64,000 nt of DNA from Bugula neritina (taxonomy: Eukaryota > Animalia > Bryozoa): positions 3,205,929 to 3,269,928 of the forward strand of contig OZ037769.1 in assembly GCA_964035545.1 (NCBI GenBank). The letters run 5' to 3'. The notes beneath the pieces were generated by a model that was not told where the DNA came from, ran no database searches, and worked only from the letters and a program-made list of their open reading frames with translations. Numbering within the stretch: position 1 is the first letter of the stretch; every line of letters begins with the position of its first letter. Positions 2,610 through 50,300 of this stretch are shown piece by piece. The translations under genes were made by a program, and so were the position numbers.

Positions 2610-4267
2610 ATGAAATCATTAGTGTTTGTTACTGGAGTGGCTTTGGTAAGTTTCGGTAGCTAATCAGTGATTAAAAATTATTCATATGTAGATATAGTAT
2701 AGAAGTGTAATATTATTCTAGTTATTTATGTTTATGTGTATAACATTATAACTGTGGGCTACATAACAGAAACCTATATATCCATAATAAAGTGCAAATT
2801 ATATGTTTACTTACATACAGGCATTTGTAAACTAAATATAACATAGAATTTTTAAGACACTCAACTGTTTAATGAAGATAATGTTACATATACAGTACAC
2901 GTGTAGGCAAATTATCTTTTGATTTTTTTCTGTTAGAACAATTGTGTGCACAACAAAAAGCTATTTAACAATCTCATTCTAAATAAATTTATGAAAATTG
3001 AATAATATGTCAGTTTCTAACGCCAAATCTGAAAATTTACTCAGAATATTTGTATAATACCAATGTGAGAAAACTGTATTTTAATATTATGCGATTTATA
3101 ATACAATGCTGCATATATAACATGAAATATATAATAATTTTCTACTTTCTGTATCATAATAAACTTTTAAGTAAGAATGCGTTTTATGTTATTATATTAT
3201 TATATATTTCAGTATTATATAGATTATCACGTGCTGCATATTATTATAATATATATTTAGATGTACTTTTAGTATATTATGTTATTTTATTCTATAATAA
3301 AACTATACATATTATACAGATGCTGACAATGACTGTAACAAGTGCAGCACTGACTGGCTTGAGAGATGAGATCCCAGGAGAGAGACCTTCGGACATCATG
3401 AAGGAATTCCAGCAACAAAACATTCACAAGGTGAGAGTTTTGTTTCTACTTAAATACCCACACAGGTCTTCAACACAAATCACCTTAGACTTCGCAGGTA
3501 AAATATCCAATGGACAACAGAAAAACATTTACCTGCTAGAATAAAGTAACTACCAATGCTACCATATTTTACCAGATTATTTTCCATCTATGTGTGTATG
3601 AGTGTATCTATATAAACATGTTTCTAACTGTTGCAGCCGGAAGTGGATTGTACAGTGAGGATGTTTAGCTATGGGACTGTGAATGCATATTTGGGTGTCA
3701 AAAATGGAAAAGTTGTCAATGAAAAACGTGGAAATCACCCTAACAGTGAGTTTGTAATATTTAATAAAGCACCTAATTATCATTAAGAAATTGCCACTAA
3801 AAACAAATTCAGTTTAACAATTAGTTTGTTGGTATAGTAAAAATTAAACAATATGGTATTTAATTGATCTCACGACTAAAATATCATTGTGGAAAAAGCA
3901 TTACATCCTATAGCAGCTTGTATATTTTAAATTTACAGGGAAAGCACAAAATTGAAGAGCAAGTATAATTATAACTTGAACATTTATGGTTGCATGTCTT
4001 TTATATGTTATAACCCCTTTGATTGAAAATAACAACAAAAGCATGCTATAATAGTGTTAGAATGTAAAAATACATAGACACTTGTTATTTGGTAAAGAAT
4101 TAACATGATTGATTTTGTTGTGGTGTAGCTAATATCGTGAGTTCCTTCCCACACACACACTTACTAAACAGTGCATGAAAAGGTTACCTTAGTTAACACT
4201 ACAAAGTGTCGTTTGACTATCTGTATTCTACAATAGTACATATTATATATATATATATATATATATA

Positions 4268-4352
<85 letters not shown>

Positions 4353-5228
4353 TATACATATATATATTATACAGTAGTACATATTATATATATATTATAC
4401 AATAGTACATTTTATTTATATTCTACAATAGTACACGTTATATACATATTCTACAATAGTACACATTACATATTTAGACAGACTTTGGGTGGCCAAGGCT
4501 GCTGACAGTGCTAAAGCACGTTCCTACGTAACATTCATTACTGAGAGGGGGAGACGAATTGCTGGAAAACAAGCTGCAGGTAAAAACAGGTGTGAGCACA
4601 GAGTACCCCAAGGAGATGTGGAGAGGCTGGTGATAGAGAATGATAAACTATCCGTTAAGGTAAGATTCATGGTATTTTATATTATCATTTTAGAATTTAA
4701 ACTGAAAAACAGTTAATAAAATCATTTCAGAATAAAGTTTTTCTTATAGCAGATGATTAGCAGGTCTTTTCTTAGATTTGAGTGTCCAATGCAATTTTTA
4801 GTGAACTCATTTAATATATACACAATTTTAGTAAAATTATGAATAGTAATGTGAAATTTACGGCTACCTGTGCAAGACTATAACAGTGGTCTAGGTAAAA
4901 ATGTTCAATTTACATTACAAAGATATTTGCTATTCTGTAGGTGGTGGATGAATCAGAGGCAGCATATTTTATGATCAGAAGATTACCTTTCTGCGGGGAG
5001 GCAGATCAAGCCCCCCCTCTTCATGTTCAGCTAATGTTCATGGATCAAGACTCACCCTATCATCGCTACCTACTCAATGCACGCCATGTCATTGGTCATG
5101 CTGTGGAATATAACCTGGTTAAACCACCAACTCATGACTGTACAGGTGATAAACCCCCACAAGCGTCAGTAGAACCAGGCACTCTGTTTAGTCTAACATA
5201 CGGAGAATGCTGGGCAAACTGCAACTAG
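2610..5228 (+). CDS. Secreted protein A, 241 aa, putative beta-trefoil (FGF/IL-1-like) fold
   Basis: 5 exons: 2610-2645, 3320-3430, 3637-3745, 4478-4659, 4941-5228. All introns GT-AG, phases 0,0,1,0, 726 nt in frame. Signal-peptide-like start MKSLVFVTGVALMLTMTVTSA; core DCTVRMFSYGTVNAYLGVKNGKV...GTLFSLTYGECWANCN. The gene model is well supported; the fold is inference. Confidence 0.8.
4243..4368. repeat. (TA)n microsatellite
   Basis: Direct. Confidence 0.95.
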
Positions 5229-6291
5229 GCTGATCTCAATAGAACTATATATTAGTAATATTCAACTCATCACTAAGGCTGAGATCTCAATAAAACTATG
5301 CACTCATTATTAAGAATTCATTGAAATACTTTTACGCTTTTCAAACCAGTTATAGGAAAATGTTTCCCTACGACATCCTTTCTCAAACTTATCATTATTC
5401 ATTTTTTCTGTCACTTGTGTGAAAATAATGTTTATTTTATTCAACCCTTACACTGATACTGTACTATGTGTAGGGTACTAATTTTGCAAACTTGCTTTTT
5501 ACCATGCTGATTTTGAAAACCTTTTTATTAGCTACTTGCCAAGTTGCATTTGGACTATATTAAACCAATTTTTGTAGTTTTAACATTATACCATGTATGA
5601 CCAAAGTTGCTATTTATAATTTTCTATTTTCTTTCTAACTATAATTTTTACTGTCTAATGCAAAATCAATCCTTGTTTAAAACTTATACAAGTGTGAGAT
5701 TTTTAGCAATATTTATAAGTTATAATTTTTATTTATGTTTACATTCAATAAAACTGCTGAAATGCGAAGATGTTAAAACTGTTTCATTTGCCTGAAGAAC
5801 TTGAGTGGTTTCAACTTTTTTTAAAAACAATATAAACACTCATCACCTGTATAAGTTACCATCAATAGCACCATTGAGTTTTTATAACCCAAAGCAAACT
5901 ATTTCCAAAACAATTTGATTCACAAAACTAGCTCAATGTTTAAGCTATTTCAGTTCTATGTTGTATAAACAGATTCAAATGTTTGATAAAAATGTTGAAC
6001 ACCAAATTCATAGTACAATAATTATAGTGAAACTGTAGCTATAATTACTAGCTACCTAATGTGTTACGAATTACCATAGAGAATGCTATACTAAATGTAT
6101 ATAACATTACTTTAGCAGATACTTATTATTATGAAATTTTCATGATTATGAAATGCACAGTAATTAATTGCTTAACATAAAAATCAATGTAAAGAATTCT
6201 TCAGAATGTAAAACTCACTAAAAAGTAGGGATGATGAGACATACTTTTATTTACACTGAGTTGAAATTGAAAATAAAAAATGAAGTGCAAG

Positions 6292-7353
6292 CCTTCATGT
6301 CAGCATAGATTTGAGTGGTTGATTAGCTTAAGACAAGGAATTACAGAAGCTGCAGCAGCTCCATCTCTTTTATTTAATTTAGAGTTTAGACCAATGAGAG
6401 TGCAGATGAGTAATGATCAGACTGAGTAACAGTTGACAGTTATATTAAATTAAGAAGTATTGTTTTGAGTATTCCAATGTAACATCTCCATCACTTGTCG
6501 ATGGTCAACAAATAAGTTTTGAGTTATTACTAATTCATAATGATTATAATCTCATAAACTTTCACGTGTTTCCAAAGGTTTAGGAAATAAAAACTTTGAG
6601 CAATTCTTTGTTTGTATAAAATATTCTCCAATTGCATTTCTAACAGTTTAGCATGTTCTGCTTCTATGCATTATGTAACTCAATACCCTAACACTTTCTA
6701 TCTACAGTAATTTACTCTCAGTGCTTTCAGCTGTAAACTTATGGTTTTTGCTTACAGGCCGTTTTGAATTATGTAAATACAAGTTTGAAAAATTTAATGT
6801 ACGCAGACTGTCTCTTTCACAGAAACCACTAAATTGAATACGTTTGTGTATTTGTTGATGATTGTGCTATTCAATACTTTATTGAGTTGGTTTCAGTACC
6901 ATAACTCCAACTCATCTTAATTTAATTTAATGTTCTGTGTTCTGTGTTCTGTGTTCTTTATAACGCATACTCCATGACATGTCTTTGGGCTGATGGGTTA
7001 GAATGTTAGATAGTTGTTTCATTTCAGAACTCGAGCTGTTCTTGATTTCCTAAACCTTTGAAATCATGTAGAGTTTTATGCGATTATGGTTATTATGTAT
7101 TAGTAATTACTTGAACTCTATTTGTTAACAATTGGCAAGTGATAGAGATGTTAGTTCGTTAAAGTCAAAACAATACTTCCTAATTTCCCATCCCTCTAAT
7201 AATTGTTAGTTAACTGCTACACAGGGTGGTAGCTACTCTTCTGTACTCTCATTGGTCCAAACTCTAAATTAAATAAAAGAAGTGAAACTCCTACAGCTTC
7301 TGTGATTTCTCCTCTCCAGCAGATCAACCAATCAAATTTATGTCGACATGGAG
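6292..7353. mobile_element. Foldback/MITE-like element with ~320-bp diverged inverted arms (~6292-6607 and ~7026-7353)
   Basis: TTTTATTTAATTTAGAGTTTAGACCAATGAGAGTGCAGA on the left matches the reverse complement of TCTGTACTCTCATTGGTCCAAACTCTAAATTAAATAAAA on the right. CAAAGGTTTAGGAAAT/ATTTCCTAAACCTTTG also pair. No TSD resolved. Confidence 0.65.
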
Positions 7354-8425
7354 GAAAATTCTATTTTTAGTTATGCTTGTAACTAGTTCTATTAGTAATT
7401 TCAACTCTGTTGGAGAAGATCGAAAAGTTGTGAAGTTTTGCATGATGTTGTATGAAGTGCTAATTGGTCAAGAACCTGCCATATTTTTCGCACCAGTGCT
7501 CTTCCTCATTTGCTTATATAGAAAGTTTCCACATGTCTATAATTTGCTTTCATATTTACTTGAGGAAGTATACAAGATGAACAACCCATGTGCATAAACC
7601 TAGCTTAAAGTCGCAAGCACCAACCTATGTTGTGGTACGAGGCGTCATCTTAAAACCTTTGTAATTAGGGGTTTGTTGGTTATTGACCCTAGTATAAGTG
7701 ATGCTTTTCTTCTCCTCTCCCACCTTGTATGCAATAACTTATTTATGCAATGTGTAATAAATTTGAGTAATAAGCATGACTTTTATTGCTTTCTTTAAGC
7801 TGTATAGTTGCTTAAAACTGATTTTCTATTTACACATGTGTGTCTTATTTGTCTAATCATATCATATCATAATCATATCATATAATGATGTGATATAATT
7901 ACATCATATAATCATATCATATAATAACAGAGGAACTTGGATATACAACTTTGCTAGTAAAGTTTCTGTGAAGGTGAAGGATTCTATGTACACTTATAAT
8001 TTATCATCATCTTCATGTATAGTATTTCAGTCACATTTGCAAGAGAAGTGGTGTAATAACTAGTATCAATGCGCAAGATATTACACCAAACTATGCGCTC
8101 ACTAGATCATCAAATATGGAACAATATACACGCCTATAGTTTCTATTTATTTGGCAAAGCACTCAAAAACTTACTAAATATTTCAAACAATATAATAATA
8201 CACAACAACATAATAATTTTTAATAGCAAAAGATGGACACACACTACAACTACACTAATATATGGTTATGTCATACTAAAGCAAACTGAAACACATATAA
8301 TATAAACTACACTAATGCATAATGTAAAGCAATATGAATCTTATATTCTTGAAAAATATATGTATTGATAAATTGTGGGTAAAAACTCAGAAGAACTTAA
8401 TAGGAAAAAAAGCCTTAAGGAAGAG

Positions 8426-11400
8426 TTAAAGATGTCCTTCGTAGCTCATCATGAACAGACTGCCGGGCATTACGGAAGCAGTCGAATTCTGATTGCCTGT
8501 TGGACAATCCACGGAAGAAGGCCTCACGAGTTTCACCTCGGCTTGACTTCTAAAGTTGAACTCAACATGAACAATTGTACGGTGATACTCGCTCTCGGGC
8601 TCTATCAGCATTAATTGTACGAATTGTGGTTTCACGAGTGAGTAGTTTATCGTACGGTCGCAAATTGGAGGGAAGCGCTTGACCATAAAATGTGCTGCTC
8701 TTCTTTCGGTAGACACCTACAAACGACAGCAGTTGCTTACAAAATGGAGTTCACTAGCTCAACTAGTGTGTTATAATAACTAATAAGGGAGCATAACTCT
8801 TGATAAGCCATAAATCCATCAGAGTGAACAAAAAATGATTTAGTCAAACTTTTCTATAAAAACTAAAATATAATAAAATAAATTTGATATTTGTAACACC
8901 CATTTCAACAAACCTTGAAATTTGTTAAAAAATACCGAGGTTGCTTTTGTTTTTTTGTAATTCATGCAAATTATTTTTTTCTAAAAAGATTACAGTTTGA
9001 AAATATTAAGCAATTAGTTTCAACAAGTCACAGCTGAAAGTTATCGCCCGGTTAAAAAAATTTTCATTTAGAATTTTCAGTTTTCGACTAAACTGATACA
9101 GCTCCTTGATCTAAAATACTTTACTTAAAATGTTGCATTTTGAAAGTTATGCAAATAGCCAGAAATTGTATGCAGCAGCACATTTGACAATGGAAAAATA
9201 ACTCTTTATTTCAACTCACATTTGCCACAATACTATCTCCCATTCTTACAAGTCGCTCTAGTGATCCATAAAGATGTATGTCAGAGGTATCTTGTATGAG
9301 ATCTTTGGCACCTAGGTTAGTTACAAACGAGACCAGAGAAAAGCTTCCAGTTTCCACAATCTCAGAGCGCCAAAGCACACCTGAAAGAGCCAAGTAATCA
9401 AAAATAAAATGAATAAATTAATGAATAACAAATGATTTGGTCTAACTTGAGAACTGAAAATTTTTCTACATGTGAAACATAAGATTTCTCTTTTTATTGC
9501 CAATGAAAGTTGTTGACAATAAGTTTGTTGATATTTCTAATAATGGAATGATTTACAGCCATTATTATTACACTGCAATGGACATAATAATATATCTTTC
9601 AAAATTTAATGTTGACAATATAATAGCTGCGTGTATTTCCATGCACATATTGCAGTATTCGATAGAGTTAACTCATTGGCAGACTGGCAAGCTACATGTA
9701 CTATCAATTGCTAATACTGATCACTGCAAGTTTTAGAGTTGACTTTTTCCATTATACCAACCGCAATCTCTTTCCATTTATTTTCTGCAGCAGAGAGCAC
9801 TACCTAGAGGCTGTTATAAAGCTAGAGGGAATAACTCTATAATTATATTATGTATGCCAAATTGACGCCCGTTGCTAGAGTTATCCTCTATGAGATGATT
9901 TTATATGACAGCTTTTTAAATAGCAATCGCTGTTCTTTGCCTAGATTCTGGTCAATAATTCTTCTATAATACAGGCATATCGAGATGTTATAATATTTCA
10001 CTGTGTACAGACATTTATGATCATTGAAAGTAGGCTAACACATTTCTCCCTAGTACATAGTATTTGATCATAATATTACTATTTCAATTTGTTTAAACTG
10101 AGCTGCTCAATTTTAACTTTAACTTTAATTTAAAGTTTAAGATGTACGAACTTCTAGTTGTAGAGCACGTTCAGCTCCGGTTACAGGCTGTAACTGAACA
10201 CTCAGTAATTAGTAATTATTAAACTTAAAGTTAAAGCACTGCAGAATGAGATTCAGATTGTTCAACCTTTGAAGCTCTGCAAGACTCAGACTCAGACTGA
10301 GAGTGAGTCTCAGTCTGAGACTGGTAGCCTTACGGCTTACACTTAAAGTTACAGTTTAAGTTACTGTTAGGCCAGTTACATGATATTATTTCATATTTGT
10401 ATTAAAATTTAATTTTATATTGATATAATAACAGTTTTATTACAACATTTAAACAATTTTAATTAAATATTATCATAATTATGTATAACATTAACTGTAA
10501 GTATTCTGTATTGGCTATTGCTAATGTTATGTTAATTAATTATTATTATAGTTTAAATTTCTAGTCATAGTGGCATCAGCAAATGAATGCAACTCAACTA
10601 CAGGAATAGACTTATTTTTGTAGAGAATAGCCACAGGTCTATTATTTATATGCCTATGGCGCTGGGTAAAATCGCTAACACTAGTACTAGTAGTAATGAT
10701 AATTAATAATACTACTAGTAATTTATGTAGTTTAAATTGCTTAATTAGCTAATAATACTGATAATATTGCTACTATTGGTATCACTTATTAGTTATTAGT
10801 AATGCTAGTAGTAAATGATATTAATATAACTTTTAATAGATATACTATTACTATTAATTTTACAGTAACTATGCCTATTAATATTAATTGTTATTTATAC
10901 AGTAGACTCATACTTATAAGTTATTAGTTATTGCATTTAATATGTTTTATTTTATTATAATTATGAATATATTTATAATTATAATATTGGTGCAGTTTGA
11001 GCATAAGCAGCTAATTGTTTATTAGCCGCTTATAGTTATTGAATTTATTATTTAATTAATATTATTGCTAATTTAATAATAATCATTATTTTGTGAGCTT
11101 CAAGTATACAGTTTATTTTATTTTGAATCGTTTGATATTTAATTTGATTTTTTCTATAATTTTTATAATAATACTGATGGTTATTATTGTACCAAGATTC
11201 TAAATTACTCTGAGTTTAGCTAACCAGCTTTGTTATAACTAATATAAGAAATGAACTTAAAGCATTGTGATTATGAAAAAGTGAGAGTTTATGCTGATAA
11301 GTTTATGACTATGGTTATGTCTATTAAAACTATTGCTGTGTGAATGTATATGGCAATACTTATACTAGTTACTTAGTGAATTACTAAACTCAAATTGTTT

Positions 11401-13309
11401 AAAATTTAAAGCAATCAACTAAAGTTTATGTTTAAGTTCTAATTTTAAACCTTGAATTTTTCATACATTTAGACGAACTGGCAGTGTAAATGTCAATATT
11501 CAATCAATAACAATTGTGAAAGGTCTATATCTTTTTCTTGCTTTTTCATTTCAAGTTTAATTTTTGTATATTGGTCACCAAAATATTTTAGTGACTGCTG
11601 CAATGTTGTATGTTTTACCTCTCTAGGTGGTTCAAAATTGAAGTAAGCACGTCAGGTTGTAAAAAACTTAGTTAGAACTAACAGTTGAACACATAAATTT
11701 AGTTTTCAACAACTGATGTAAAGTAAATAAATAAGGGAAACCTAAACAAACCTTTATATCTTTTCAAAGCTGCGTGAAAATTACAGCAGTGCCTAATACA
11801 TACTGTAAAGGGGTGTAATACAAGGTTCACTTACTGTGTGAGTTTTTTAATACTCTTTTAGTTTTCAGTGGTTTATTTTGATCTGTGGTCTGCCGGACAT
11901 TCAGAAAAGCTCCAGCTAACGGGCTGAACAGCTTAACTTTTGTATTGAAGTGAGGCTAAAAAGACAAACTAATAAAATTAATGGTTTACATGTTGAGGAT
12001 TGCTTTTTTTGCCCAAATTTTTACATGGATAGAGAATTTTTATAATGGATTTCCTACAGATAAATGTGTTGCCTTTATTTCAAAGTCTATTCAGTCACAA
12101 AGGAAAATTACTTATATTGTAAACACATTGTTAACAAAACAAATTTTTATGTACTTTCTAGATTTTCAAAAACCTGATAAAAAATTTTAAAATTAAGTTT
12201 TCAGCAAATTCTATTAAACTATTTATGTGTTTGACCATACAGTTCTCTTTTCACTAACTATACTATTTTTTATTAATTGAAATAATTTTTTTCTTTGACT
12301 TTATATTTTGACTCTGAAAAATGCAACTTTCACCCATTTTTGGAAAAAGAATATTTTTATGAAAGTAATACAAATGTGATGTTGCACTATTCTAAAATTT
12401 TATAGTGTTTTCCCTAGTGCTACACAAGTTTACAGTTATATATGTTATAGTGTTTTCCCCAGTGCTATACAAGTTTACAGTTATATATTATGTGCACCAT
12501 TTAAGCCAAAAGCATAACCAAATTATTATAGGCAAGTTCTTTATCAATGTGCTTTTTAAGAAAAGCTATTCAATTTATTTTTAAATGTAAGTTTGTGAGA
12601 AATAAAATCTGTTCTGAAATTAACTACATTTGCTTCAAAAATATTAAAACATTTTTCAATTTTTTTTCCAGTATCAAACATCGTAGATTAATTTGTTATG
12701 TGTTAAAATAAGTTATTTGGACATACCAGTTCTATTATCTGTCTTTCAGCTTCTAAGTAGATGTCTGACCATCTCTCTACTGAGCGCTGTCCGTACACAA
12801 CCATCTCTGCTGCCGCAAGCAGCATGAGCAACAGCAGGTGACCTTGTCGCTAAATTGTTATCACAGGTAATCAGTATCTTACAGTAGAAAAAGTAAAAAA
12901 TAGTTTCTAATTCACAAATTTTAACTGTTGGTTAAATTTGTGAACTGCAAGTTTATGATTTTTTTCAAACATATTCATTTTATATTTTTATCCAAGTTTA
13001 TTTTGTTTATACATACAATTTTAGATGCGAAAGGAAAAAATATTCAAAAACTTGCTACTTTTATTTTGAAAAAGTTTCTCACTGAGCTATTTTATTTTAT
13101 TTGCTCACATCTGATATTCATTATTATTTAATCAACTACTTCATAAATACAAAATTATTGTTTGAATCTTCTAATTAAAATTGGATAATTGTGGTTAATT
13201 TAAAGTTCAATATCAGTTTTTATCAAATGTTGAATGAATCAAGAAAAAAAAACTTCCACTTGCACAGTTTGAATTTAATATAGAATTTTTTTTAAAATCA
13301 TACCTGCAT
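8426..13309 (-). CDS. Secreted protein B, 233 aa, paralog of protein A (putative beta-trefoil)
   Basis: 5 exons: 13309-13304, 12849-12727, 11955-11835, 9380-9220, 8716-8426. GT-AG introns, phases 0,0,1,0 as in gene A, 702 nt. Start MQRQGHLLLLMLLAAAEMVVYG is signal-like. Motifs aligning with gene A: ERWSDI/ERPSDI, VKLFS/VRMFS, ERLV/ERLV, AAHFMVKRFP/AAYFMIRRLP, VQLM/VQLM, SEYHR/SPYHR, ASVMPGSLF/ASVEPGTLF. Confidence 0.8.
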
Positions 13310-14075
13310 GATCAAAATATCGCTGGAGAAAAGATTTCTCGTGTGTTCAAGTATTAAAAATGGTCGATGACTTATGATGTCGAGAATGTGATGGGTTTTG
13401 GTTAGGCATGCTGCGCTTTTATACCACTTTACCATCCGGTTTACGTCATTTTGGCATTTGAAAAAATTTGGGGGAATTCTTGACTTCTTAAAGGGGATTG
13501 TTTTGGGCATTTTGGTTAACATTTAAAATAAAAATCTATTGGCATTATCACCTATGAACACACTTGGGGTGTGTGTATACAGTATGACTAACTTTATTGC
13601 ATACAAATTGTTTGTCTTGCAGGTGTAATATGATCACACACACTATTCTCCATAACTTCCTCATTCTATTACAAAAAGTTGATTGTTTTATATTTACTGA
13701 TCAATACACTTTTACTCATTTTTACCTTTTGTAATTATACCTTACAAATTTACAGCTCTACCTGTCATTTATTTTACTAATCATTCTAGGCGATCATAAA
13801 TTATCTTTGTTCAAGAACAAATAGAACTTTGACTAACAGAAAAATACAAAAGGCGTTGAGTTTTTTGAGAATTATAATGTGAAATACTGTGGCTCTAAAA
13901 TTTTGCTTTTTGTGCATATAATTATTTCAAGCCTTTATGCATATTTTGATATTTTAAATTTATTAATTGCCCTACCCTACCTTCATTGTAGTTTTTATGC
14001 ATTTACTGTTTAAAACTCAACTCAAGAACTTTAAAATAAACTTCTAAATATATTTTCTTTTTAGCCATTTTAGTC

Positions 14076-26157: not shown

Positions 26158-46762
<20,605 letters not shown>

Positions 46763-47324: not shown

Positions 47325-50300
47325 CTATTGTTCGGGTATTTCAACACTAGTCATAGAGACAGCAATGCTGCTTGTACTTGTTTTCATTCTCTCCAGAGCA
47401 GCCATGTTTTTAGAGTCTGCCGGCATGTGCTTACTATGTACTGGTTTTACAGTGTACACAGTTGGGGGTCGAGATTGAGATGTTGTAAGTTGCTTAGAGC
47501 CATTCACCGTAGGTGGTCTAGTACTAGTAGGTGGTCTAGTACTCACACTAGTAGGTGGTCTAGTCTGGTTGGGCGTTTGTTTTGAACTTGTGTCAGTAGA
47601 CGGTTCTGTATCTGCTTTTGTAGCAGGTTGACCATCTGAAGATTTATCTTTTTCTTTTTTAACCCTCAGTGATACGATTCCAGCAAACTTATTTTTGTCT
47701 CGTTTGACAGTTTGACCGGCTGCTTCTCTGCACTTGTCAATCACAGATTGAATTGCGAATGACAAAAATAAAGGAATTATTATGAGGTTAGTGACAAAGA
47801 CAATGGCGAAAGAATGATAGTTGGCTACTAGAAAAGTAGCTGCGCACACCATGAATGAGCAGACATACACGGCAGAAAAGTTTAGTTGTGCCGTCGTTAT
47901 GGAGTTGCCGAAGTTATCCGGTGCAATGTGGTCAAAGTAATACTGGTAGATCAATACACAGTAGCCTATTAATACAACTGCCCAAATCATGAATATCAGA
48001 TCTATCCACCATTCTCTCAAAACATAAAACACTCGCTGAAAAGTTCCAAGTGATTGTATATCTCTCAATCTTCCTGGTGTGGCGTGGACATTTTTTCCTG
48101 CAAATCCCATAATGCTTTTAGCAACTTCGCCTTGATCTTCAAGTTTTTTTCTACAGTCTTCCTTTTTTATAACTTCCAAATTGATTTTGATCATGAGCTC
48201 TAGAATGAAGTAATAGTTGGCAAACACAAACACAAAAATACTGAGAATTGGCAAGATTATGGTAGCCATGAGCATTATGGCAGTGGTATAAGATATGTGT
48301 ATCTTTTCCTTTTCTGCTATCTCTTGTGGAAGATTCTCGGGCAGATTTTCAAAATATATTTGTAGAGTTAATTGAAAAAGTAAAAACGCAAACAAGAAAA
48401 CATTTAAGATTATCGTATAAAAAATTCTTGAAGTAATATCGAATCGAGTCGTTCCAGTAGCATCTCCAAACATCTCGTTGAGATTGGTAATAAACCTGTA
48501 CGTCATGTAGATTCTTGTGGCGTACACATATGATAAACTTAGCATGTCAAACGTTATCAAGATCAAATCCAAAACTCCCTAAAATCGTATATAAAACATT
48601 CAATACTAATATTGTTGGAGTAAATTATAGTAATTGAATAGTAAAACTATACTATGCTCTAACTAGACAAGTGAACCATATATATGCAAGCATGCATGCT
48701 TTCATCATCCTACATATAAGACTATACGTAACGTTATGCTTCTTAACATCAAATATTCTTACCTTTCTAAAAAATTAAGCCACTGATTGATCATAATAAA
48801 AAACAGGTACTTTAATTTTAAAAATGGTGTATATGTAAGTAGATATGTATAATTCCTAAATATTTGATTATTTTAGAAACTCAAAAGGTATAAGTAATTT
48901 GTTGAATACAAGTAATTTCTAACTTTTTCAAGATATCTTTTAGCAAATTTCATAAATACGACTAAAATTTAGTAAATTTATTACAATTTTCCAGACTATA
49001 AAAATAACATACCACATGTTGATCATAGCCAATTTTACTTCCATTTTCAAAGTCTTCAAAGACTCTGTCCGTGGTGACACTGATGAGTGAGCAGAGAACT
49101 GTGGGATACAGCAACACTTCAGCGAGGATGTTGTCTATTAACTGCTGCCTCTTCTCAAAGGCCTGCTGCTGCTCATCGGTTTTCTTTTTATACCAGGCAG
49201 TCCTATGAACGAGAGCGTTGAGTGTGAGCAGCACCACGTCAACCATGTCCATCATGAAGCAGGTGAAACCAAACTCTCGGTTGGACGCTGTTTTCAGCAC
49301 TTCTGATCTGATGAGGTCAACGACACTGGCAATAATGCTGACAGCTAACACCAAGTACGGCAGCAGTGTTGTTATCAGACTGAAGAACTTGTTTAAAGGT
49401 CTTTCAGTCAAAGTCTCAACTACCTAGAGAGGAAATTAATAAATAAATGATAGAGTTTTCTTCTCTTACAAGATTACCTAATAACTTACACTTGCTCATC
49501 ACTATAAACATAATGCAAAAATTTGCTCATATTTTTATTTGAAAATAAAATGTGCAATACAAATTTTTCCTTTATCTATATCAATCCAAATACACACACA
49601 CACACACACGCACGAAAGCACACACACACATATATATATTAGATATTAGCTATATGTTATGTAAGCTACTAAAAACTATTTGTTTTTTCATGCTTTATTG
49701 CGAAAAAATATTTTAGTATTTATTATTATTGCATACACTATATTTGTTATTATCTCTTACTTTAGGAATAAATGTCATATGCATGTTACAATAATGTTCA
49801 ATAGCATTCATAGTTGTAACTTTGCTTATTGCATAAAGTTTATTCTGCAGTGTGCAATGTTCTAGCAGTTTAGACATGTATACAAACTAAAATAAAACTG
49901 AACATTTGATTTACATCTGTTATATACCAAAAGTGCAAAATGGGCCCATGATATATCAAACGTTCTAGCCTTTCATATAACTCTGCTACCAACTGCTATA
50001 ACGGTACAGAGAGCAGACAATTTCTGTATATACCTTCAATCCTTCCTGGACCTGCTCAGTATTCTCCTTGTAGCCTGCTCTCTGAGTCTTCTTCACAACC
50101 ACACTTTCAACCCACTTGGTGAGAGGTTTATCAGACCACGAGCTATCATTGAGCTCTTTTATCTGCAACACCCGGATGTGACATCACTCTCTAGTTCAAC
50201 ATATCATTCCGATATTACAAAAAGTATTCTGTATTATCCAAAACAACCCATTCTTTGAGTTGCTTTCTCTTTAAAACTGAAGCTGATTCATAAATAAGCT

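Follow-up and report, generated by a model that had tools for sequence, protein, structure and literature searches.

The stretch of the Bugula neritina genome analyzed here (64,000 nucleotides (nt), G000:C5:3205929-3269928; hereafter the window, to whose positions all coordinates refer unless a contig is named) contains two convergent five-exon paralogs, gene A (2610-5228, plus strand) and gene B (13309-8426, minus strand). Our preferred explanation, held with only modest confidence, is that they are functional members of a bryozoan multigene family of secreted binding modules, probably of trefoil type and probably linked to NF-kB-controlled defence. The two genes have the same exon structure, their paralogs are under purifying selection, and kB-like motifs recur in the promoters of several members. 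Judged from sequence, the family is lineage-restricted, its products are likely to be defence-related binding modules, and a role as cytokines is speculative. Hardly any molecular work exists on immunity and signalling in bryozoans, and a literature search returned nothing on bryozoan beta-trefoil proteins; what is new here is a set of correct gene models for a family known publicly as truncated fragments and one "uncharacterized" RefSeq protein.

Gene models, paralogs and distribution

The genome is 216 Mb long with about 30% G+C; the window lies on the contig called C5, and C1, C3, C7 and C9 are other contigs of the same genome. The original prediction described two convergent five-exon genes with shared intron phases, and this structure held up when both strands were read: every junction in genes A and B is GT-AG, and the phases calculated from exon lengths are 0, 0, 1 and 0 in both. 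The exons are as follows (the numbering of putative beta strands is discussed below):

2610-2645, plus strand: gene A exon 1, MKSLVFVTGVAL, with which the putative signal peptide begins; phase 0, with donor GTAAGT; gene 0 (below) preserves both exon and donor
3320-3430, plus strand: gene A exon 2, remainder of the putative signal peptide and the R-x-S-D-I...Q-x-I motif; phase 0
3637-3745, plus strand: gene A exon 3, PEVDCTVRMFSYGTVNAYLGVKNGKVV..., putative strands 1-3; ends in phase 1
4478-4659, plus strand: gene A exon 4, RLWVAK...YVTFITE...VERLVIENDKLSVK, putative strands 4-7; ends in phase 0
4941-5228, plus strand: gene A exon 5, 95 amino acids (aa) and stop, AAYF...C...VQLMF...DC...PGTLFSLTY, putative strands 8-12
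13309-13304, minus strand: gene B exon 1, whose coding part consists of two codons, ATGCAG, followed by GT; phase 0
12849-12727, minus strand: gene B exon 2, hydrophobic HLLLLMLLAAA putative signal core and the RWSDIYLEAERQIIEL motif
11955-11835, minus strand: gene B exon 3
9380-9220, minus strand: gene B exon 4
8716-8426, minus strand: gene B exon 5, 96 aa and stop, about 91% identical to Bugula neritina KAF6029539.1

The kinship of the two genes, which had been proposed in spite of their heavy divergence, is borne out most directly by exon 5, where genes A and B are 39% identical, much more alike than chance would make them (tblastn E 2e-14); exons 3 and 4 are tied together through paralogs on C3 (tblastn E 4e-8 for gene B exon 4, 5e-5 for gene B exon 3 and 0.008 for gene A exon 4). 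The exon-2 R-x-S-D-I...Q-x-I motif of gene A is likewise present in gene B, the C3 paralogs and the bryozoan Watersipora, and in its general form, R-x-S-[DA]-I-x-x-E-x-x-x-Q-x-I-x-L, this segment lies directly before the core in all members. Both N-termini are hydrophobic and resemble signal peptides as predicted (MKSLVFVTGVAL and the start of exon 2 in gene A, HLLLLMLLAAA in exon 2 of gene B), and the motifs quoted earlier, KVKLFSPLAGAFLNV, CTVRMFSYGTVNAYLGV, ERLVIENDKLSVK/VVDESEAAYF (the slash marking the exon joint), GTLFSL and GSLFMM, are all present as written. The description of the pair as unannotated-looking is fair. In the GenBank annotation of Bugula neritina both genes are represented only by two neighbouring "hypothetical proteins", truncated to 86 and 102 aa (KAF6029539.1 and KAF6029540.1), which match exons of genes A and B at about 90% identity; in the second of these, exon 2 is wrongly spliced to sequence from the middle of exon 5. 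A long (TA)n microsatellite (4240-4350), at which short-read contigs break, lies in intron 3 of gene A.

A third paralog, gene 0, lies 2.7 kb before the window on the minus strand (G000:C5:3200644-3203223; L013). It duplicates gene A, together with about 2 kb of promoter, in inverted orientation, and genes 0 and A stand head to head. Its five exons are intact and its GT-AG sites are kept, with 26 differences in 720 exon nt and 0 insertions or deletions; the proteins are 95-97% identical and the introns and flanks 68-91% identical. The ratio of nonsynonymous to synonymous substitution rates (dN/dS) between genes 0 and A is 0.38, and it ranges from 0.08 to 0.42 for pairs of C3 paralogs. Open frames with conserved GT-AG sites are present in all three C5 genes and in no fewer than five of the copies on C3.

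The only full-length annotated relative is a Watersipora subatra RefSeq protein, XP_067931240.1 (271 aa, "uncharacterized"). Its genomic locus has four junctions whose positions and phases equal those of genes A and B:

Junction 1: ATGAAG/GT, a two-codon first coding exon, compare ATGCAG/GT in gene B
Junction 2: ...QQAIEL/PNFDC
Junction 3: ...DKDPN/(T)IFW, phase 1
Junction 4: ...RLVAK/VTSEG

In addition, metagenome open reading frame (ORF) fragments (below) begin with translated acceptor sequence at the equivalent exon-4/exon-5 boundary. On this comparative evidence, from the gene 0 duplicate, the dN/dS values and the Watersipora gene structure, we judge the gene models sound, short of transcript proof. 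The sole public run that contains the locus has no splice joints; it is a DNA run, and its contigs span the introns. A second contig in the same run carries six single-base differences at 5151-5217 (the end of gene A exon 5); it represents another allele, or else gene 0 in collapsed form.

How large is the family? A six-frame search of the genome with an exon-5 profile gives 12 loci, three on C5 (genes A, B and 0) and nine on C3. The C3 cluster (G000:C3:25230000-25300200; L004-L012, L014-L017) has at least nine loci in both orientations, with exons 2, 3, 4 and 5 in the same order as in genes A and B and with short introns. The exon-5 frame is intact in five of these copies, and the other four are truncated or stop-bearing (L009 with a TGA).

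Outside this genome, the exon-5 profile hidden Markov model (HMM) was searched exhaustively against 1.84 billion representative proteins and gave 12 matches: two Bugula fragments, the Watersipora protein, six AT-rich metagenome ORF fragments (on contigs of about 35% G+C) and three that are driven by repeats. Of the last three, a bacterial MopE-repeat/type IX secretion protein (P0009) and a Sushi-repeat protein (P0005) were rejected as spurious, having been drawn in by repeats and composition. Two further searches found no full-length homolog beyond XP_067931240.1, and tblastn detected no upstream exons in the metagenome contigs (L019-L024). As far as sequence can see, then, the family is restricted among named organisms to cheilostome bryozoans.

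Promoters, predicted fold and likely role

The promoter elements read from the sequence upstream of the two genes are as follows:

1256-1266, palindromic: kB-like site GGGAATTCCC, at -1354 from the gene A ATG; kept in the gene 0 promoter (L013 8436-8446)
2337-2346, plus strand: kB-like site GGGAATTTCC, at -273 from the gene A ATG; kept in the gene 0 promoter (L013 7492-7501)
2502-2510, plus strand: TATA-like box GGTATAAAA, 108 nt upstream of the gene A ATG
13417-13425, minus strand: TATA-like box, the identical nonamer GGTATAAAA, 116 nt upstream of the gene B ATG

Matches to kB-like sites number seven in the window against an expectation of 1.18. The two upstream of gene A, both perfect kB-type decamers, are kept in the gene 0 promoter, which is 85-87% identical to that of gene A; the GGGAATTTCC decamer is also present upstream of a C3 paralog (L016 8726), and similar sites lie upstream of several C3 members, whose proteins are only about 40% identical. 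Rel-homology genes are present in the genome on C9 and C1.

Do the cores of these proteins fold as beta-trefoils? The evidence in favour comes first from the ESM Atlas, in which the features of the XP_067931240.1 core (residues 79-271) score 0.90-0.91 to beta-trefoil families; the neighbours are CDtoxinA, RicinB_lectin_2 (20 of 30 hits), Inhibitor_I66, AbfB, FRG1, Fascin and Ricin_B_lectin, all of them beta-trefoil. The ESM Atlas model of the same core aligns with models of ricin, MIR, AbfB and CBM13 proteins over 133-145 residues with template-modelling (TM) scores of 0.57-0.62 on the query. Second, the sequence has a threefold pattern, in which each putative unit has a hydrophobic first strand, a tight hairpin (cores YLGV, RLVI and YLLN) and an aromatic closing strand:

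Trefoil unit 1: first strand VRMFS, hairpin AYLGVKNGKVV, closing strand LWVAK
Trefoil unit 2: first strand VTFIT, hairpin ERLVIENDKLSVK, closing strand YFMIR
Trefoil unit 3: first strand VQLMF, hairpin RYLLNAR...AVEYNLV, closing strand LFSLT

Third, the best-conserved regions of the core are its N- and C-terminal strands, as closure of a trefoil barrel predicts. AlphaFold2 was run twice on XP_067931240.1, with an alignment of exon-5 rows only in run 1 and with a MAFFT alignment of exon-3, -4 and -5 fragments of ten paralogs, correctly placed, in run 2. The resulting models show an all-beta core with about 12 strands at the expected places, at low predicted local distance difference test (pLDDT) values.

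A number of results weigh against the reading of genes A and B as trefoil-type defence genes. No public RNA run contains the locus, and no member in the genome has transcript support. The 2.7 kb or so upstream of gene B contain no kB-like site. Pfam scans of each exon of genes A and B singly (E≤10) and of XP_067931240.1 as full-length proxy (E≤0.1) gave no family match (a sub-threshold SEA match, E 0.075, was ignored), and a PDB sequence search with the family profile at E≤10 gave none either. The two AlphaFold2 runs reached pLDDT values of 37.5 and 39.6 and gave no confident model, and the ESM Atlas model is itself of low confidence (predicted TM score 0.54, pLDDT 0.49). ESM features and ESM structure form a single line of evidence, and the features overlap little (about 100-114 of 256), which is expected for a distant relative or for a chance match. 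An hhalign comparison among the three putative repeats found no significant similarity, with only PNTIF and PGTLF aligned, and the (QxW)3 sugar-binding motif is present nowhere in the family, which has L-W, [HY]-F and L-F at the equivalent positions. Function is wholly inferred. Foldseek rows of OspA/VioE type returned for the second AlphaFold2 model were discarded as meaningless because the pLDDT of that model is too low.

The most serious alternative, which we regard as unlikely but worth weighing, is that the family consists of lineage-specific secreted all-beta proteins that fold differently, for example as a jelly-roll or an Ig-like sandwich, and that the trefoil matches are an artefact of a low-confidence language model. 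It gains from the failure of both AlphaFold2 runs to give a confident model, from the ESM model's low pLDDT, from the undetectable internal repeat, and from the ESM calibration, in which scores near 0.9 arise for 4-10% of shuffled proteins and uniform clan agreement for about one third of them. An undetectable internal repeat is also usual for FGF and IL-1-type trefoils. What speaks against another fold is that every named neighbour, in features and in structure, belongs to the beta-trefoil clan and that these neighbours span more than six Pfam families, that the TM values exceed 0.57 when normalised on the core, that the roughly 12 predicted strands carry the threefold hydrophobic pattern, and that conservation peaks in the terminal strands. 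The trefoil core that had been proposed thus has moderate support: ESM features and model match trefoil families only, and AlphaFold2 pLDDT values of 38-40 leave it with no confident model. In terms of model predictions a beta-trefoil core is, we think, probable.

If genes A and B are read as trefoil-type defence genes, their products would be secreted proteins of about 240-270 aa, made up of a signal peptide, the conserved segment and an all-beta core of about 165-195 residues that most likely forms a 12-strand beta-trefoil. A disulfide between two invariant exon-5 cysteines (in the FPxxC and DC motifs; C193 and C248 of XP_067931240.1) probably pins the core. The signal-peptide-like N-termini and this cysteine pair together point to an extracellular protein, which may serve as a binding or recognition module, lectin-like or ligand-like. 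The family would have grown by tandem and inverted duplication under purifying selection, a pattern typical of recognition or defence factors, and its expression would probably be switched on through Rel/NF-kB as part of defence. Because the family is expanded, under purifying selection, apparently secreted and equipped with kB-like promoter sites, we regard it as a candidate inducible defence or recognition system. Should the fold be borne out, the family would be a new sequence family among beta-trefoils.

Relation to known beta-trefoil systems

The original prediction likened the pair to FGF and IL-1 on the basis of intron positions and strand-like motifs, and the genome offers a direct comparison in a canonical FGF gene on C7 (G000:C7:15494185-15496070; L025, L026), which was found with the Pfam FGF model and has the motif DCEFHE. 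The middle exon, which corresponds to HMM positions 43-69, lies between a phase-1 intron that precedes the region of strand 4 and a phase-0 intron that precedes the DCxFxE region of strand 8; the last exon (196 aa) begins KDKTKDCEFHE and has a long basic serine-rich C-terminal tail. A search with its exon 3 gave three close ORFs only. The premise that FGF genes are split by a phase-1 intron after strand 3 and a phase-0 intron after strand 7 therefore holds in the C7 gene, because its middle exon is bounded by exactly these introns. In the bryozoan family a phase-1 intron would fall between strands 3 and 4 and a phase-0 intron between strands 7 and 8 when strands are assigned from sequence pattern, an assignment made without a confident three-dimensional model. 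The phases and order of the introns match the C7 gene; their FGF-equivalent placement is conditional on the strand assignment.

Membership in the FGF or IL-1 families was not borne out. The FGF model (PF00167) matches no exon (E≤10), XP_067931240.1 (E≤0.1) or family locus (six-frame genome, E≤1), and in that genome search it matched the C7 canonical FGF only. The IL1 model (PF00340) matched no exon and not XP_067931240.1, and it found nothing genome-wide at E≤1 in a search without a positive control. The ricin models (PF00652 and PF14200) also match neither exons nor XP_067931240.1, PF14200 matching other genome loci only (E≤1); the proposed comparison with FGF, IL-1 and ricin-B profiles, carried out with Pfam models, thus leaves the family without a match to any of them. 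The CxFxE strand-8 motif, already noted as missing (AAYF/AAHF), is indeed absent: the family has AA[YH]F[ML][IV][KR]R where the C7 FGF has DCEFHE. Because there is no HMM match and no CxFxE motif, because the core is longer, and because FGF and IL-1 are not among the ESM neighbours, we file the family, on its sequence features, under neither FGF, IL-1 nor ricin-type lectins.

Likenesses and differences can be set out system by system. With FGF the family shares the predicted beta-trefoil core, the putative strand 4-7 exon block between phase-1 and phase-0 introns and the strand 1-2 sequence pattern. It differs from FGF, beyond the missing HMM match and CxFxE motif, in its apparent classical signal peptide and conserved pre-core segment, its core, which at about 165-195 aa is longer than the roughly 125 aa of FGF, its invariant cysteine pair in the last exon, and its tandem expansion and restriction to bryozoans among named organisms. 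With IL-1 it has in common a beta-trefoil (predicted here), clustered and fast-diverging paralogs and upstream kB-like sites, and it differs in matching no IL1 HMM and in its putative signal peptides; most IL-1 members are leaderless. The ricin-B/CBM13 lectin domains and CDT-A/C (PF00652, PF14200, PF03498) are the nearest ESM neighbours in both features and structure and are, as the bryozoan proteins would be, secreted binding modules, whereas the bryozoan family lacks both the (QxW)3 motif and a detectable internal sequence repeat. MytiLec/CGL-type lectins of marine invertebrates are leaderless proteins of about 150 aa with obvious triple sequence repeats and links to defence. The bryozoan proteins resemble them as lineage-restricted marine-invertebrate trefoil proteins tied to defence, if the predictions above are right, and differ in being longer, in carrying a probable signal peptide and in having no sequence-level repeats.

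Could the family nonetheless be a highly diverged branch of the FGF/IL-1 cytokine-type trefoils, making a secreted ligand for an FGFR-like or Ig-TIR receptor? We consider this improbable. The intron arrangement, taken with the sequence-pattern strands, is the one found in the C7 FGF gene, and Watersipora has these junctions too; the motif of strands 1-2 (hxhhS...G-x-F/Y-L-x-V) is FGF-like, and clustered paralogs with kB-like promoter sites recall vertebrate IL-1 genes. Set against this, the FGF and IL1 models miss the exons, the full-length homolog and the loci while the FGF model does find the C7 gene. The family lacks CxFxE, its core exceeds that of FGF or IL-1 in length by 40-60%, its nearest ESM neighbours include no FGF or IL-1 cluster, and the strands on which the intron argument depends were assigned without the backing of a confident model. 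A still bolder version, to which we give slightly less credence again, is that the family is an ancient and extremely diverged FGF/IL-1 trefoil offshoot that has retained the two core introns and operates as an NF-kB-inducible cytokine system with its own receptor. Were that offshoot real, it would be a lophotrochozoan counterpart of IL-1-type signalling, and if the FGF intron match reflects ancestry it would, speculatively, bear on the origin of trefoil cytokines.

The weakest alternative, that the genes yield no expressed product and are either decaying pseudogenes or ORFs chained by chance, might be drawn from the missing RNA runs, the truncated GenBank models (86 and 102 aa) and the four damaged C3 copies (L009, L010, L011 and L012), and it is very hard to maintain against intact frames and conserved GT-AG sites in genes A, B and 0 and at least five C3 copies, exon conservation far above intron conservation, dN/dS values of 0.08-0.42, a RefSeq ortholog of equal gene structure in another genus, and TATA-like boxes about equally distant from the ATGs of genes A and B.

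Other elements in the window

Away from the gene pair, a G+C-rich island at 37948-42191 (54-60% G+C against 30% for the genome) has minus-strand ORFs with a gag zinc knuckle, an aspartyl protease and an integrase zinc-binding domain, and is a long terminal repeat retroelement; no reverse transcriptase domain was recognised in its 769-aa ORF. Two further ORFs, at 47328-48572 (minus strand, 415 aa) and 44110-44634 (plus strand, 175 aa), have no Pfam match. A reverse-transcriptase domain (RVT_1, E 5e-32) in a 393-aa ORF at 31985-33163 (minus strand) marks this ORF as a separate retroelement fragment. Genes A and B have a foldback-type inverted repeat between their 3' ends (6292-6591 and 7042-7354), with arms of about 300 bp that are 78-79% complementary and separated by 450 bp; a miniature inverted-repeat transposable element or a foldback element is its probable identity.

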